DNA of 64,000 nt from Trichosphaerium sp. ATCC 40318 (lineage: Eukaryota; Protista; Tubulinea): the NCBI GenBank assembly GCA_038496445.1, contig JALMLS010000316.1, positions 1 to 64,000 on the forward strand, in the 5' to 3' direction. Numbering within the stretch: position 1 is the stretch's first letter; the number at the start of each line of letters is the position of its first letter. Shown one piece after another: positions 28,497 to 42,007 of the stretch. Position numbers and translations under genes: made by a program. Below the pieces are notes generated by a model. It saw only the letters and a list, made by a program, of their open reading frames with translations. It was not told the DNA's origin and did not search any database.

Positions 28497-28943
28497 TACT
28501 ACACGTGTAAACGTGTGTGGAGCGTGACAATGTACAAAAGAAAAACACTCGAATAAAAAAAATTCTATTGTGTCCTTTTTTGTTAGTACCAAGTGCTAAA
28601 GTACTTGCATATCTCACTCCACGTGTTCTTTTCTTAGCCAGAGAATCTCGAGTTAATGTTTCGTCTCAGAACAACAAGCATTCATGGAAACCAAACGCAT
28701 CAGTCTGATTCTGGTAGCTCCGTGATGACACAGCAAAGACACGTGAGGGAAAAATAGCACCAGGCAAACTGTCAGATGTGTATGTTGCCAAAGATCAAAC
28801 ACCAGATTGGTGTAAGAGCAGAAAGGCACGTGCAATCGAGAGTTACGCTGTTTCTCACAGGAACAGCAGGTTTTCAGCTTTGTTTTCTACTAGCTAGTAG
28901 CAACGCAGATGTATAAAATACAATGTTATTTTATTAATAGCTT

Positions 28944-31900
28944 CTACACCACAGGTGTAATATTTACAGGCTTATCAACTTTGCGTGAATTGGCAGATTT
29001 ACCTCTTTTGGACCTTTTAGAAGATGAAAAACTCCTAGTCATTGATTCTAAAGAGTCATCTTCTTTCACATTATCTCTTGAGACGACAGATGATTGGGAT
29101 CGTGAGTGCTTTTTTTTCTTTTTTCTTCCCTTTGAGGACTTGCTAGATAAAGACAGCGATTCATCAAGTAATACTTGTTGTTTATCTTTAGATGATTTCT
29201 TTGAACCAGTTTTGTCATTATCACGTGACTTTGAATCTCTTTTTTTTGATACTGAACGATTTCTCTTTGATCTCTTTGTACTTCTTCTCTCATCTCCAGA
29301 ATGTTTAAGACCTCTTGATCTACCTCTTGATTTTTTAGCTACAATAGTGTTCATCACATCATTCAGATGTTCCTTATGCTTTTGGTCCATGTCTTGTCTC
29401 TCTTGTAATTGATTATGCATTAGCTCTAGTAATAGTAAAGAATCTCCATCTGCGACATCTTTGAGCACATTCAAGTCTATTCCCATCGTGTTTTGTTGTT
29501 TTACTTTTCTTGAAGACTGAGGTATAATAGAGATTGGTCCAATACGTTCAGGAGGTGCCAGTTCCGGTACATGTTTTGGCTGTGGTTCCACTATGAGTTT
29601 TGGGTCATCTTGTGGTAGTTCAAAAATCACGTGATATCGAGGAAGTGCTTGAGATTCTACACAGTTCATGAGTATATGAATTTTTAAGACAACGATTGTC
29701 TTCGTAAAGAAAAGAGCTTAAAACTACCTTGGTTGATTACTAACTCATCAAAAATGTTTTCTTTCGGTTGGTTTTCTTCAGGAATAAGACCTTCCTTATC
29801 AACTATAGAGAAGGGTATAAGCACGATAATCCTTTCTACTTTACACTTTTTTAAACTCACCAAGCACATAATGACTTTGATATCCACACTGGAGACCTTT
29901 TCCACCTAAAGAATCCTTTCCACTTGGTGATTCGATAACCTGTTATTCAAAGGAGTTAGAAGTAATTACTTCTTAATGAGGTGAATCAAGAAAATCGTAC
30001 AGGATAAACATTGCCAGGGAACACCAATGAGAGGATTACATGAACTCGTTTTTGGCCTTTTGTCTTTCCATACTCACATGCGTATGGCACGTGTGAGGTA
30101 AAGTACATACCTAGTAGCAAGTTAATATCGGCCTTATGCGCTATTAATGACGATTAAAAACACACCTGTGCCATAGTATCCTAGAAATAAGATTAGAAAG
30201 TCAACATGAAGCAGGAAAAAAAAACCGTGCCATGATCAGTTGTCCCGACAACGCTGAACCCAGCCTGACAAATACTCGAAACTGCACTTTCCCTTGTACC
30301 ATGAGCCATTATCAAAATGGGTGTCTAAACAGGCCTTTAGAGAACACGCAAGAAAAACACTAATGATAAAATCGACAGATGTACCTCGTTGTAGTCATAG
30401 CGTTGTGCAGTCATTATACTATCACCGTTTGTATCATCGTTGAACATGAAGCTATTCTTCTGTTCCCATAACGCATCACATTTTCGGAGTCGCTCTCTGT
30501 AAGCACTTTGAACGCACATCCGCTTCTTTCCTGTCCAGTCTCTTCGTCTGAAAACATGTGGTTGACTCCTAAGCTCAAAACATAAGGGTTTTTTTTTGTC
30601 TTAACAGCTTCGTACTTATGCCTGTGCGTCATTAAAATAGCGTTTTCTCCAAAACGTCTTGACTGAGCCTCATTGTGAATCATTGATGCACCAACAAGTT
30701 TATAACTATCGCCTACGTTGTGTAAATCACGTGATTTCATTTCATTTCACTTGGCTCAAAAATGGTAAAAAAAATGTACCTCCAAGCAATGTGATGTATT
30801 TCTTTAGAAGTTTCAGTTCTCTTCTTGCAACTCGATCATCGTTATTAAGAAGATCCAATGTCCTTGTTCGCTCTTAGATATGCGCAAGTAATGATTGAAA
30901 AATACCGTACCTGTAGTCAATGGTACCATGTGTAGTACGTGGGTGTGGGTAGAACCACTTGGGTGAGAAATCAAGACGGAAAGATAGTTGCCATCTATCA
31001 GGGAACTCTTTCTTGTCTGTTTTACTCTGATGCATACTACCCATGTCATCTATAGCATTGATATTACTATCCCATTCATCAGAAAGTAATGCAGCCTGCA
31101 TTTTGATAAACAGTAAGAACAAAAAAAAAAATAGTAAGAGATCACTTACCATTTTCCTATCGAGGATGTAGTTTCCTTTACTCCATTCCTCGTATGAGAT
31201 ATTACTTGTCAAAAGCGACAAACCACCATTGCGCAATGCGGAGGCCCAATAATCGCGGGTAAGCTACAGGTAATCAAAAAAATCAAATGGGCAAAAAAAA
31301 ACACGTGATAATCAGTTCTCTTTGAGGTGAAATACGCAAAAGACTTTCAGACTTAATTCTTGTAATAACGCACCAATTGACTTATCCATTCCTCAGTAAC
31401 GTATTTGGACCATGCAGGGTAGTTCTTTGTGTCTATGTGCCAACTTTTTTCTGTTTCGAGAATGACTGATATCAAATCATCTCTTGCCAAGAAAGAAGGA
31501 TGCAGTTTACATGATACCTAAAATTAGTTAAACAACGTCATTTCAGAAGTTTCTCCTTGGATGGAGCTCAAGTTTCAAATAGCGTACTGCAATCAACTCA
31601 CTCGGAAATGATAGTCCGAGTCGCTCTGTTAGTGCAACCAATCTAATTCTGAAACTTCTTGTGGATTGTTGCCAATTTACAAGTTCATTAACTAGTACAA
31701 TTATAAGGACCTTCATGTGTAAGACTAAGAGGACTCACTATTAATAACCTTCAGCGAGTTTAATTTTGACTGAGCGTAATCACCTATGATAAACCATTAA
31801 TAATTGGCAAGAGGAGCAATTAAAACTTGTCAGTTGAAAAGAGAAAAAACGGATAAGGCTTACTCTCCAAAAACTCTAGCTTTTGACGGATGTGTTCGCC

Positions 31901-34448
31901 TCTTATTAAAGCCTGACAGAGCAATAAACTTTTCTTCTCTTCATCGTTAAGTGTTCGCTTTATCGTTTGTCTAGCTAACTCCGAACGTGTTGCGTTCTTG
32001 TTAGACTGGTGAAACTCAGATTTTTTGATTATCTCTAAAAACACGTGATAAGCACACAAAAGAAAGAAACACTCGAAAAAAAAAAGCTCTTGAATGGCTT
32101 ATATCAAACTTACTGTTCCAATTGGCGAGTTTAAAAAGTGACTTGGCGCCCTTGTCTACGACTTCTCTTTCCCTTCGTGATAGCACGTGCGAGGAGTTCG
32201 CTCTTCTCATAGGCAATTTTGGTGAAGCCACAGCTGGTTTAGGCGATTTCGGAACTCTTTTTATCTCTGGGCTTTGTCTGTGTTGTCTTCTTGGACTTTG
32301 TCTTCTAGGACTTGGAGTACGAGTGTTGCCTATTGTAATTAACCACGATCTTTGATCCGCTACAAAGAACGGGAAGTAATCTTCACCCTGCAGTTCCTTG
32401 AGTAGTTTAAGGATCACTTTGAATCTTGGTCTGTTCGAAGGCTTTTCGCTCCAGCATTTCTTCATGAGAGCTTTATAGTACTGAGGTATCCCTGTTACTG
32501 GAGGACGCTTTCTCTTTGCGATCTACAAAAAAACAATCAATGAAAAAAAATCTTGGGAATTCACTGTCTTCTTTTGCTTTTCATCGGTCTTGGTTTCTTT
32601 CAACTAAGCTATATTACGCACCAAGCTCATCCATGCTAATGGGTTAGAATACTGATCTGGTGAGAATATCTCACACATAATCATAGCAAAGGAATAAACA
32701 TCAGCTTCTTCAGTGAACTTAAATGTTGAACCGGCAGTTTTTACATTTAAGATCTCTGGCGGCATGTACGCAATGTGGCCATGGCTTTTAGAATACCTAC
32801 AATAAAATAGTAAGAATATAATCAATGCCTCTTTGAAAACATCAAAGAACGCACCACGCTTCGCTACTGCGCTTAGAAAATCTACTCAAACCAAAGTCTG
32901 AAATACAAAGATTAAGTTTCCCTTTCACTTTGAACTACGGAGTACCACGTGAGTAAAAAATGAAAGTAAACCAAAAGAATTTCTTACCAGAACATTGCCG
33001 CTATTTAAATCTCTATGCAAGATACCTCGCTCATGCAAGTACGCCATACCACTTGCAATTTGAATGCAAATCTAAAAATCTATGAACCAAGAAAAAAAAA
33101 GAAGAAGACTACACTTGTATGCTATATAGCTTCTCATACAAGTCCTCTAGTTTTCTCATAAAGTCACCAACAATACCAAGCAGCCAATAAGCTACGATTT
33201 CCATATTTAAATGGAGATAAGTACGAACGTTGGCTGGTGACTTTGTGAAACCACATGTGAAATAATGCGGATTAGATAACTGTTTCGAAATTGTACCTTC
33301 AAGGCTGTATCTAAATCCATTGACTTTTTTCTATTATTCAGGTACTCTTTAAGATCTCCACCTTTGTAATATGTCATTACAATGAATAGATTGTCATCCC
33401 CAGACCGACAAAAACCCCGCAACCTTACTATATTTTTATGTTGAACGGAGCTACAAAAAAACCGAATTAACAAAATAGTCACTGAACACGTGGTTTAAAT
33501 AATCAAAGTCCGCACCTCAATACAGCTAATTCCTTCTCTAAAGCATCTTTTTGCTCATTTTCAAAGTCATCATTTGAGTCCTTGACTGATTTAACGGCAA
33601 CCCAAGTTCCTACAGAAAACACGTCACATAAACCAAGCTTATTTACGTTTAACTAACCCCTGTGCTTGATTTTGAATACTATACCATAACCACCTATGCG
33701 CTGGATGAGGGATGGTGCATTAATTCCTTTGGTACAATCACTCCGTACCTCGCCCAATATCCTCTTTAGAACTCACGTCAAACTCCGATGGGTCTATTCT
33801 CCTTACACTACCATGTTGCTCACGGTTTTTTGTCACTAGAACTGTGCCGATCAAATTGAATTTTCCGTCATGTATTCCACAGTACTTCTTGCATGTTTCC
33901 CAATCTAAAATGGATATCAGCAAGGCATTACACATTATTTGGATCGAGTGTAGCTATATTTGGCTTGTTCAAAAAACTGTGAAGGAAGTGGACCGTGTAG
34001 TTTTGTTTGATATGTACAATTGTCAGGAGCCAGTGCAAAAAAACCGTTTAATTAACACGTGACTACCATTGGGCTATTTATCGGGATGAAAAGTTGAACC
34101 GAAATTCCGACAACTCCCTAACACTGACGTCCCAATTTCCCCCTCTTCGAAAAAAAAAAGTACAAATTCTTTTTGAGTGTACCTGCTTCAGTTTCTATCG
34201 GAATTGGATCTCCGTCTACATCCTTATAGCTGAGCTTATGTATATTCTTCTCGTTAAACGTTTTCCTTGTTTCCTCAAACAGTTCTTCCAAAGTCGCTTT
34301 TTCTGGTAAATAATACCTCTTTATCAACCGTGAAGCATCGCTAGACGTTTTAAATATTAAATCACGTGATAATTGTTTATTTCGTTTAAACGTACCTCAA
34401 ACTACGTACAAGAGCGCATTTTATTTCTATTGTCGCGCTCTCCGCCAT
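28944..34448 (-). CDS. Multidomain PB1 - tyrosine-kinase-like kinase - IQ - PARP-like ADP-ribosyltransferase with a Lys/Ser/Arg-rich tail
   Basis: PB1: IEIKC..LSYKDVDGDPIPI. Kinase: IGRGGYG, VAVKS, HKNIVRLRG, HRDLNSGN, SDFGLS, YMPPE, ADVYSFAM, CWSEKPSNRP. IQ: CQALIRGEHIRQK. ART: MAHGT, GYYGTGMYFTSHVPYA, YQSHY, IFDELVI..QALPRYHV. Exons from the kinase end to the ART splice in frame. A further 3' exon near 28700-28890 is possible. Confidence 0.88.
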
Positions 34449-35428
34449 TAGATGACGAACACTGTCTAAACAAACAACTTAACTGCACGCGTTTAAGTTC
34501 AAGAATGTGCTAGAACTGGTGCAGTTCGGGGCTTCAAAACTTGTGTTTTATGAAATTAAAAGGTTGTTGTCTAGTCAACAGTGTCAGTAAGGCGAAAATG
34601 TCTTCTGTAACTTTAAGAATTTCATCATGTGCACGCAACAAAATTAGCAGTGCATCACACGCTCCACGTTGACGCTACTCCAATAAAATAAGACCGCAAT
34701 ACTGATGTTGTGTCCACCAAGCAATGTTCTGGTCAGTGTAGGTGCGTCTGCACTGTAGCGAGCCTCTACTTTCGGCCCAAAAATCTACTTGTACGTTTCG
34801 CATTGATTTGTGTTTATCAAACCTATGAACCAAAAAAGTCGTTCCTACCAAAGACAGATTTTTCAGCGCTTTTTACAACCAATTTGGTTTTTCTTACCAT
34901 CCCATGAAATCGCATTATTAGATAGTTTTTATGAACTCTACGAACAAGCAGCAGCCTTGATATACGTAGGCATCACATGTATACCACGTGGTGGGCACAT
35001 TCTCAGTTATACAGGGTCTTCGAGAAAGCTACAAGTTGATTTGACTTTGTTGTCGCGATGGCAATTAAGGTTCGGTTCAGGCAGAGCAACGCAATGTCAC
35101 ATATGACATACAAACCGCATTGCCAAAACCGTGTTCCATTTGTCTGCATTGACAATTAAACAAACATACAGCCAGCTTTGAGATCTTGCTTCTGTAATAA
35201 TTTCTGAAGTACTTCTGAATTGAGATTGCTGTGGCATTACCAAAGAACAAGAAACGCATAATTTTCGCAGAAGTAGTATTGTATACACAACACTGCTTCT
35301 TTCTTACGTCATTTCAATATGGGCCGTTCAAACCAAGTTCTGTGAAACAATACCGATTCGTTCCCTTTGTAATTATTTGTTAGTTTTCTGTCCATCCATT
35401 CGAACGATAACTACGTACAAAAGGCAAT

Positions 35429-39461: not shown

Positions 39462-40457
39462 TTAAAATTGAGGTGCATGCGCAATAGCGTTAAAATTTTG
39501 CACAAAAGCACCAGCATTGTACATACAATGAGATTGGAGGTTACCTGTCTTGCTCCAGGTCTTATATTCACCAACAATCTTACCATCTTGATAATTACAT
39601 TGCATAATAATCTGACCATTCTCGTTCCAGATACGAAACTCACCGCTCTCTTTTCCGTTTTTATGTGCACCAACAAGCCTAGGTTGACCACCCAAATACC
39701 ATTCTCTCCTCTCACCATTAAGTTCATTGTTTTTATAAATATAATGTTGAGCTAGACGACCATTTGTATGCCATAATTTGAAGTCACCGGTTTTGTTTCC
39801 ATTCTCGAAATGACAAACTTTTGCCAACTGACCGTTACCTCCAGGACCAAAATATTGCTTGAAATCACCGTGTTTAAGACCAAATAGATAATTACACTCC
39901 TTATAGAGAGTGCCATCTTGGAACCAAGCCTTAAACGATCCACTACGTTGACCTTTTCGGTAAAAGCAATGTCTCGCTAATTGACCATTACAGTGCCATT
40001 GCTTATACTCGCCATGGAATACACCGTTTCTTTGGCTACTTTCAATAGATAATTGTCCGTTTAGTAACCATGTTTTTACTTGTCCTTGTAGCTTTCCGCG
40101 CTTGTTAAAGTGACAATGACGCATTACTTGGCCGGATTTGTCGTATAGTTTGAATTCTCCGTATCTCTTTCCTTGACGGTATAATCCTTCTTGTACTACG
40201 ACTTTTACGCCTTTTTCGTTACGCCAGTACTTCCTAAACTCGCCGTGCTTGCGACCATTCTTGATTTCTTGAGTGATAGTTGTACGCCCGTTTTGAAGCT
40301 TCCATAGACCATGACGACGCATTTTCTCGTTATATCTAGAGTTTGTAGCGGCGTATTTAGAAAGTACAGGCCATTTAACGAATACTTCATAATCGAGGTT
40401 GTAAATGATTGATTGTAGTTCCAGAGGCAGTGAAAGGAGTTTAACTAAACGATTCAT
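39462..40457 (-). CDS. F-box-like motif plus MORN-variant (YwqK-like) repeat protein, intronless
   Basis: LLSLPLELQSIIY N-terminal motif, then about ten ~24-aa repeats (NG..HGE(F/Y)K.W..NGQL...C.(F/Y)). Single ~1 kb ORF, ATG at 40457. Confidence 0.85.
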   Translation of the reverse strand: MNRLVKLLSLPLELQSIIYNLDYEVFVKWPVLSKYAATNSRYNEKMRRHGLWKLQNGRTTITQEIKNGRKHGEFRKYWRNEKGVKVVVQEGLYRQGKRYGEFKLYDKSGQVMRHCHFNKRGKLQGQVKTWLLNGQLSIESSQRNGVFHGEYKQWHCNGQLARHCFYRKGQRSGSFKAWFQDGTLYKECNYLFGLKHGDFKQYFGPGGNGQLAKVCHFENGNKTGDFKLWHTNGRLAQHYIYKNNELNGERREWYLGGQPRLVGAHKNGKESGEFRIWNENGQIIMQCNYQDGKIVGEYKTWSKTGNLQSHCMYNAGAFVQNFNAIAHAPQF

Positions 40458-42007
40458 CAAAAACAGAGAATATAGAGCGGTACAAAGGCATTTTAAGTTG
40501 AAATGGTAAAGTCCTTTTCTTTTTGTAAAGTAAACTTACGTTCGCTCAATGGATACCCACGATATTGTGTAGTGCTTGGAGTGATGTTTTCTACGCATTT
40601 TCGCTTCTCTACAAAAAGGGTTAGTGAACCAATTTTAACGAAAAAAAGGTATTCGGAGATGATCAAAAAGTCAAAAAAAGGTAGTATTTGTAAAATGAAT
40701 GAAAGTGCCGACGATTGTGTTGTGTACGGTTGAAGTCTTTGATTAAAAATTCACGAATTTTTTTTTGAATCCTAGTTTTTTACGCTAAACAGCATTGAAG
40801 TGCTGAAATAATGTTTAGGAGTGCTAGACGAGTATAGTCGTATGCAACTTGCAACTTTTTGTAAGCCTTGAAATTTCCTTTTTTGCAGCGAACTGAACGG
40901 ATGAGTGCCGGAACAGAATAGAGTTGCAGAAAAGGTAGGAACTCGATGCAAAAATAGTTGTTCATGTGAAAAACGTTTGAACTACAAAAAATCCAAAACA
41001 CTGAAGATTTATTGAATCTACAGCGCCCAGATACATCAATTAGATGATGGAAGAAACGCAGGTGATCAACTTGAGCGTTTGAGGGATTATCATCAAAAAC
41101 TCCCGCAATTAACGGGTAAAAGCCCCATATGGATTGTAATGATGTTGGTATTCTATTTTCTTCGGTTTTGCATTTAAAAAGCGCCGGCACAGTTTTTTCT
41201 ATTTTTTTTTTTGTGTTTCTCCTTTTAAATGCGCAAAATTCTTATTCAATAGGATAATGTGCGTACCATTAGACATTTTTTAGGAATCTTTGGTGACGTT
41301 GCTACACTCAGAAAAGGAACCGGGTTTGACCCAATTTTCGGTTTTTACAACCAAATCCCGTTACACATGAACTATTTGAACCGAGATTACTACAAAGGAA
41401 CTATCATTTCTAGCCGCGAATAGAACACCCTTTACAAAAAGCTTTTTTTATCTCCTGAAGTTTTCTTTTTTTTACATTAGTTTCACGCGATTAATCGTCA
41501 TCCCAACTATAAGGATCATCCGCCTACGTCAAAAACAAAGTTAATTGTGTACGTGTCAATGTGGTAAAAGTCAAAAAATTCCTTTTGACCATGATGGGTC
41601 CACAATAGCGTTTATAGCGTTTATAAACGCGTCTAGTGCGTTACACATTGACAGTTTCGGGTATATTGGCTTAATGGGCGGTTTGGAGGCCGAAACGGCT
41701 TTGTTACAACTTTTAGTCAATAACTAGCGTAGTAAAAGTGCACGTTGAGATAATTGCAACCCAGTAATGCACTTTTACACCAACGCGTTCAAAAACCCCG
41801 ACTCCTGTGTGCGACACAAAACAACGCTCACGCCATTGATTGGTGAATAAAAGTAGAACAAATCGATGTAGAATGCTTTAGTGAGTAATTGGGTAACGCG
41901 ATTGGCAACGCAAAAAGAAGTTCCGGGTTGTTTCGTGCAGATAACAAAAAAATTTCACAAAAAAAATTTCGAACATTTCAAAAAAAAAAAAAAAAAGAAA
42001 TGACGAA

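Follow-up and report, generated by a model that had tools for sequence, protein, structure and literature searches.

The plant B4 Raf-like proteins, which carry a PB1 domain in front of a kinase of the tyrosine kinase-like (TKL) group, end after the kinase. Among proteins with a PARP-type ADP-ribosyltransferase (ART) domain, PARP1, PARP2 and the tankyrases have the residue triad H-Y-E and PARP10 has H-Y-I, and the polymerisation of the SAM domain boosts the activity of tankyrase. Here we analyzed a gene at positions 34448-28944 on the minus strand of a 64,000-nucleotide (nt) stretch of DNA from Trichosphaerium sp. ATCC 40318 (Tubulinea), which covers positions 1-64,000 of contig JALMLS010000316.1 in assembly GCA_038496445.1 and is called the window below. 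We consider it likely that the sequence is a single genuine nuclear gene, which is expressed and present in one copy, with a product composed of a PB1 domain, a TKL/TK kinase, a linker, an IQ-like motif, ~200 further residues, an H-Y-E ART domain and a basic tail; we refer to it as the kinase-ART gene. Neither a kinase-PARP nor a PB1-PARP protein is mentioned in two pan-eukaryotic surveys (PMC2964712 and PMC4245714, the latter covering more than 1900 PARPs) or in text searches, none of which is a query of an architecture database. This agrees with the initial annotation of the gene, made from the DNA letters, to which no characterised protein with this architecture was known.

The window is AT-rich (38% G+C) and has many short introns. 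We checked the gene model junction by junction. The gene contains 25 exons on the minus strand, from the ATG at 34448-34446 to the TAG at 28946-28944, with a coding length of 3612 nt that is translated into 1203 residues in one frame without internal stops. Twenty-three of the introns are of the GT-AG type (47-278 nt) and one is of the GC-AG type, and all 24 junctions keep the frame. The sole GC-AG intron, with the donor GCACGG at 30230-30225, is located just before a micro-exon. The initial annotation had spliced the part from the kinase C-lobe to the ART domain by hand into one frame; this splicing is borne out by 25 exons with canonical splice sites and no internal stop, and the ends that it gave are exactly the ATG and the TAG. 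Its account of the architecture also stands, and was incomplete in that it omitted an ART family of more than 100 places in the genome, the micro-exon, and an optional 57-nt intron. With this 25th intron a 26th exon is likely, and the product would then probably contain 1184 residues.

Transcript data came from cDNA contigs of runs (among them X1, X2, X4 and X5) belonging to three studies. Spliced contigs from the three studies align to the gene at 99-100% identity with the introns skipped, and at least 16 of the 24 junctions are seen spliced. Much of the gene is joined in X4 record 10, a contig of 3324 nt. Starting at 28921, it covers the tail, every exon of the ART domain, the middle region and the IQ exon (31862-32034), continues with kinase exons 10, 9, 8, 7 and 6, and stops 16 nt inside exon 5. 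A transcript for one chain, joining the kinase through the IQ motif to the ART domain, is supported by this contig from the tail to kinase exon 6, with intron 6 retained. A second X4 contig contains exons 5 to 1 and has a loose 5′ end at 34463, which reads as the reverse complement of GTATCAACGCAGAGTACGGGG, a sequence that we take to be the SMART template-switch oligo. Because of this end, we regard the contigs as cDNA and place the mRNA start ~15 nt upstream of the ATG. Splicing of exon 2 to exon 3 is seen in X2 record 8, contigs of X4 and X5 contain the exon 10/11 and 11/12 joints, and all junctions of the ART domain are found in spliced contigs. The letters of the micro-exon (12 between the sides of the joint) are present in spliced contigs of X1, X4 and X5, and the GC donor noticed in the initial annotation, which lies at 30230, is likewise used in the contigs of these three runs. 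The 57-nt intron (32386-32330), which is in frame and free of stops, is removed in a contig of X4 and retained in one of X2; without it, the product lacks 19 residues that directly follow the kinase. The segment is either an insert of 19 residues that is used optionally or a plain case of intron retention. Differences between runs are 8 synonymous and 3 non-synonymous in the domain exons, and 1 and 4, respectively, in the tail. The counts are small but would fit selection acting on the domains. The features of the gene, all on the minus strand, are as follows.

28944-34463, minus strand: whole transcription unit, with the mRNA 5′ end at ~34463 and contigs ending at 28914-28921.
33830-34448, minus strand: PB1 domain in exons 1-3 (34448-34396, 34340-34183 and the start of 33904-33749), from the PF00564 match and motifs.
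32387-33790, minus strand: TKL/TK-type kinase domain, from the end of exon 3 to exon 10, from collinear PF07714 matches.
33072-33296, minus strand: intron 6, GT-AG, 225 nt, within the kinase domain, retained in the long X4 contig.
32330-32386, minus strand: optional in-frame 57-nt intron (GTGAAG...ATAG) in exon 10, from positions in the cDNA records, bin depths and sequence.
32114-32329, minus strand: Pro/Arg/Ser-rich linker after the kinase, from the translation, with no Pfam family.
31877-31918, minus strand: IQ-like motif CQALIRGEHIRQKL in exon 11 (32034-31864), from a match to the core pattern.
30911-31783, minus strand: middle region of ~200 residues, exons 12-16, without a Pfam family.
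29615-30862, minus strand: PARP-type ART domain, in exons 17-24 and the first part of exon 25, from weak PF00644 matches and family homology.
30166-30180, minus strand: micro-exon (exon 21) of 15 nt that supplies YYGT, from cDNA joints.
28947-29614, minus strand: C-terminal tail, from composition, with a short helical-looking stretch followed by a basic stretch.

Pfam searches were made exon by exon or on open stretches. Exon 2 alone matches PF00564 marginally, at an E value of 4.8e-5 and 23.7 bits (cut-off 23.6) over profile positions 15-59 of 84, and the PB1 domain scores 22.9 bits in a genome-wide scan. At the level of motifs, the features of a type I/II PB1 domain are legible: the Lys of strand beta-1 is found in IEIKCAL (exon 1), and an acidic OPCA-like motif, YKDVDGD...ETEAD, is found in YKDVDGDPIPIETEAD (exons 2/3). 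The proposed PB1 domain with both a basic Lys and an acidic OPCA motif is thus upheld by a Pfam match at the cut-off and by two legible motifs. For the kinase, four open stretches that cover five exons match PF07714 collinearly at 37.2, 36.1, 25.1 and 20.3 bits (profile positions 56-108, 107-137, 162-200 and 225-257), PF07714 outscores PF00069 in each of them, and the kinase reaches 40.8 bits in the genome scan. Exons 3-8 provide the motifs GRGGYG, VAVK, EKELAVL (with the alphaC Glu), HRD, ...GN and DFG, and PPE and CW...RP are also found. Among solved chains, those of the JAK, FGFR and BRI1 kinases are closest to exon 6. The assignment to the TKL kinases agrees with these collinear matches, with the core residues kept save the Lys of the catalytic loop. 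A second PB1-kinase locus is present at C42:48356-49651, where a PB1 domain stands directly upstream of a PF07714 kinase (84 and 65 bits); PB1-kinase genes without an ART therefore exist in this genome. The best genome match of kinase exon 9 is 44% identical over 46 residues, and the PB1 domain, the kinase (with 133 of 1037 candidates scored in the genome scan) and the middle region appear to have no close paralogue in the genome.

The IQ-like motif CQALIRGEHIRQKL fits the pattern Q-x3-[RK]-G-x3-[RK]-x2-hydrophobic, and translation of the window in six frames (127,996 residues) gives no other match to it. The IQ motif that had been proposed is near-consensus only, with a Cys as its first residue and no Pfam IQ match. 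For the middle region, neither a Pfam family nor a paralogue in the genome was found. When exon 15, the in-frame intron and exon 16 were searched together, a set of 1.84 billion representative proteins contained no relative, nor the product of the gene itself, and the protein atlas gave no usable match; exon 16 gave no relative among metagenome contigs. Three repeat proteins returned by the 1.84-billion search with the middle-region query were rejected as spurious. Profiles of the regions in front of the ART domain in paralogues do not match exons 13-16, and the middle region is therefore not common to the ART family. Pfam searches of the exons that lie after the IQ exon and before the ART domain did not match the accessory domains of the tankyrase or PARP1 type (ankyrin and SAM, or WGR and PARP regulatory domains).

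The ART domain is spread over nine exons. Its three motifs, HGT (30303-30295), GMYFTSHVPYA (30110-30078) and IFDELVI (29757-29737), are found on the minus strand at the places reported in the initial annotation, and the codons of the predicted triad are His 30303-30301, Tyr 30105-30103 and Glu 29746-29744. According to the cDNA, the spliced site contains AHGT in exon 20, HGYYGTGMYFTS across exons 20-22 and FDELVINQ-ESQALPRYHVIF, and exons 24 and 25 supply FDELVI and then SQALPRYHVIF. The letters YYGT of the micro-exon stand between the H and Y motifs, within a G-x-G-x-YF motif. The ending DELVI...Q..P.Y.VI has a layout like that of EEYVIFD...QQYLVEF in the canonical PARP open frames of this genome. 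By hhalign, the H-block aligned with a canonical PARP open frame over just the G-x-G-x-YF piece. When single ART exons were searched against the PDB, PARP10 was found at an E value of 0.7; TAL-effector repeats, with a score summed by repetition and no significant single stretch, were rejected as noise. In the tail after the domain, Lys and Arg make up 32%, and Ser and Thr 28%, of a stretch of ~125 residues. A match of the tail to Macoilin (E value of 0.37; 9.8 bits, cut-off 32) was rejected as sub-threshold, and no other Pfam family was found there.

The firmer support for the ART domain comes from its paralogues, its own exons being weak against Pfam. Exons 20 and 22 match 112 and 106 places in the genome, respectively, at up to 67% identity (median ~50%) and in pairs ~170 nt apart. 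In the genome scan, several of these places score above the PARP cut-off. We compared the gene with the nearest 20 (L001-L020) of ~105 ART loci. Exons 17, 18, 20, 22 and 23 are collinear in all 20 of them, and paralogue-derived profiles recognize exon 17 (E value of 8e-8), exon 18 (5e-6) and exon 19 (1e-4). The motifs HGT, G-x-G-x-YFT, P-G-Y-Q-S and DELV are kept in the 20 paralogues and in the kinase-ART gene, and the columns of the H-Y-E motifs are invariant. The 41-residue H-blocks of 16 out of 16 paralogues match PF00644 and nothing else, and the H-block profile of the family finds PARP10 in the PDB (E value of 1.3e-4, residues 69-104) as the sole single-stretch match. The prediction of a PARP-like ART with the H-Y-E triad is thereby strengthened: all three residues are kept and the paralogue H-blocks match PF00644, the Glu being read at the level of a motif. 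The nearest ART copies are located behind ankyrin repeats, with Lys-rich tails and coiled coils downstream. The PB1, kinase, IQ and middle exons have no match in the 20 nearest ART loci, and among 20 PB1 places in the genome, just the one of the kinase-ART gene itself lies near an ART. The most likely origin of the gene, judged from these sequences, is a lineage-specific fusion by domain shuffling between a PB1-kinase gene and the mobile, expanded ART module of this genome.

Two other observations concern ART loci of the genome. At L005:2115-3653 (G000:C93:147168-148706), a 513-residue open frame with F-box-like and LRR_6 matches lies ~1.3 kb upstream of an ankyrin-ART copy on the same strand, and may be part of the same gene or a neighbor. 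Canonical intron-free PARP catalytic domains are found at G000:C138:28285-28866 and G000:C17:203323-203844 (L021 and L022; 104 and 100 bits), and are distinct from the expanded ART family.

Several observations weigh against a single chain with two working enzymes and a calmodulin-binding site, and we discuss them here together with the explanations that they would favor. The locus may mainly yield separate products, a PB1 and half-kinase stub and/or an ART-only protein, by retention of intron 6 or by an internal start, with the fusion being minor or non-functional; we consider this unlikely. It is suggested by the long X4 contig, the sole listed contig that crosses exons 6/7, which retains intron 6 (the piece 32988-33452 is continuous) and thereby acquires an in-frame stop at 33212-33210, by the X2 contig 33280-33430, which likewise passes from exon 6 into intron 6, and by the absence of any removal of intron 6 among the cDNA joints listed. 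It is also suggested by the contig depth in X1 and X5, which is 7-10 times higher over the ART half (56 and 40) than over the IQ/kinase part (8 and 4), and by the absence of an exon 11/12 joint in X1. However, this joint and that of exons 10/11 do exist in X4 and X5, and 24 of 24 junctions hold one frame, which would be unexpected for two independent genes. In addition, the template-switch-oligo end indicates low-input SMART-type cDNA, which is commonly 3′-biased, and the excess over the ART half may come from such a bias or from a shorter transcript. The retention of intron 6 may be regulated. We note that this intron (225 nt) is among the two longest of the gene.

The chain may instead be single and contain one pseudoenzyme, so that one mark is written, either because the kinase is weakened by its HRDLN sequence or because the ART merely binds NAD+ or ADP-ribose; we judge this improbable. 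The catalytic loop reads HRDLNSGN, with an Asn where Ser/Thr and TKL kinases carry Lys and Tyr kinases carry Ala or Arg, but the Gly-loop, VAVK, the alphaC Glu, the Asp of HRD, the Asn of the loop and DFG are retained, and haspin is active with a His at this position. The ART copy is the most diverged of its family, its H-block being 43-48% identical to those of paralogues that are far more alike mutually, and the two adjacent ART exons that match PF00644 collinearly do so at 14.8 and 12.4 bits, below the cut-off of 26.7 (profile positions 54-83 at an E value of 0.02 and 86-122 at 0.11). The Glu is assigned by the position of its motif, and the E-block profile finds no PARP in the PDB or Pfam and gave nothing in an hhalign comparison with a canonical PARP open frame. 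Nevertheless, the H, Y and E are kept, and substitutions in the domain exons are mostly synonymous. As for the calmodulin-binding site, CQALIRGEHIRQKL has a Cys at the first position of [FILV]Q-x3-[RK]G-x3-[RK]-x2-[FILVWY], where [FILV] is expected and the remaining positions fit, and PF00612 is not reported for the open frame of exon 11 at E values up to 1. It is hardly conceivable that neighboring genes or a chimeric contig were read as one gene through an artefact of assembly or annotation. Nothing beyond the general risk of manual splicing speaks for it, and an artefact of two neighboring genes is unlikely because identical junctions are found in three independent studies at 99-100% identity, the frame is continuous, and there is no intergenic gap.

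Two features of the window were observed in addition. The sequence TCACGTG occurs 46 times in the 64-kb window against 6.0 expected; CACGTG is found in seven introns of the kinase-ART gene, for example at 34362, 34056, 32946, 32042, 31302 and 30727. At 39462-40460 on the minus strand, a 332-residue intron-free open frame contains MORN-like G-x-F-K/R repeats after an F-box-like start, and its neighbors have introns.

If the single chain with both enzymes is correct, its domains suggest how it might work. The initial annotation had pictured an oligomerising, calmodulin-gated enzyme that writes both marks in a stress or anti-pathogen role, a functional reading that we infer from domain content and keep as such. 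The PB1 domain would gather copies of the protein together, or dock it to one of ~20 other PB1 proteins, and the gathering may lead to trans-activation of the kinase. The IQ-like helix, placed between the two enzymes, may bind calmodulin or an EF-hand protein. The ART would move ADP-ribose from NAD+, singly or as a polymer, onto recruited substrates or onto the protein itself, whose basic, Ser-rich tail could plausibly accept it. A single signaling input could thereby result in both phosphorylation and ADP-ribosylation. As the nearest working analogy for the role of PB1, we propose the SAM polymerisation of tankyrase. It is possible, though in our view doubtful, that this is the first natural chain with an active kinase and an active PARP-type ART, switched by PB1 polymerisation and possibly by Ca2+/calmodulin, and that it belongs to an immune-like repertoire of the amoeba in which one ART effector is placed behind many sensor or signaling front ends, such as ankyrin, LRR and, in the present gene, PB1-kinase parts.

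Studies of how phosphorylation and ADP-ribosylation influence each other normally deal with separate enzymes, and a single-chain kinase-ART, if true, would be a compact model for the coupling of the two marks. A PB1 domain ahead of an ART, if true, would test whether assembly-driven activation, known for the SAM domain of tankyrase, is a general control of ARTs. The ART module recombines freely with signaling domains, which bears on whether such families are effector sets similar to those of innate immunity. Should either enzyme be inactive or the full-length product scarce, the gene would be only one more outcome of domain shuffling.

We compared the kinase-ART gene with its closest known systems. 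Its ART domain is homologous to the ART family of its own genome from exon 17 to the end, with HGT, G-x-G-x-YFT, P-G-Y-Q-S, DELV and SQA..RY in common; several intron positions are shared, and the paralogues also have a Lys-rich tail after the domain. In contrast, a PB1 domain, a related kinase exon, the IQ exon and the middle region are present only in the kinase-ART gene among the members examined, and its copy of the ART is much more diverged, with the G-x-G-x-YF motif split by a micro-exon. The PB1-TKL kinases, that is, the plant B4 Raf-like MAPKKKs and the locus at C42:48356-49651, share with it an N-terminal PB1 domain followed by a TKL-type kinase, whereas the kinase-ART protein continues with an IQ-like motif, ~200 residues and an ART. 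Among solved structures, the profile of the family H-block matches PARP10/ARTD10, a mono-ADP-ribosyltransferase, best, and the PARP regulatory helical domain is detected neither there nor in the kinase-ART protein; the latter differs in having H-Y-E, ~60 residues inserted before the HGT strand, and wholly different accessory domains. Tankyrase (ankyrin, SAM and PARP) resembles it in combining a head-to-tail polymerising domain, a predicted property in the case of PB1, and an H-Y-E ART in one chain, but the kinase-ART gene has PB1 rather than SAM, no ankyrin repeats, and a kinase, and is not an orthologue. Lastly, the Roco/LRRK2-type proteins are similar in joining two catalytic domains and interaction modules in a large chain; there the pair is a GTPase and a kinase with Roc-COR, and here it is a kinase and an ART without it.

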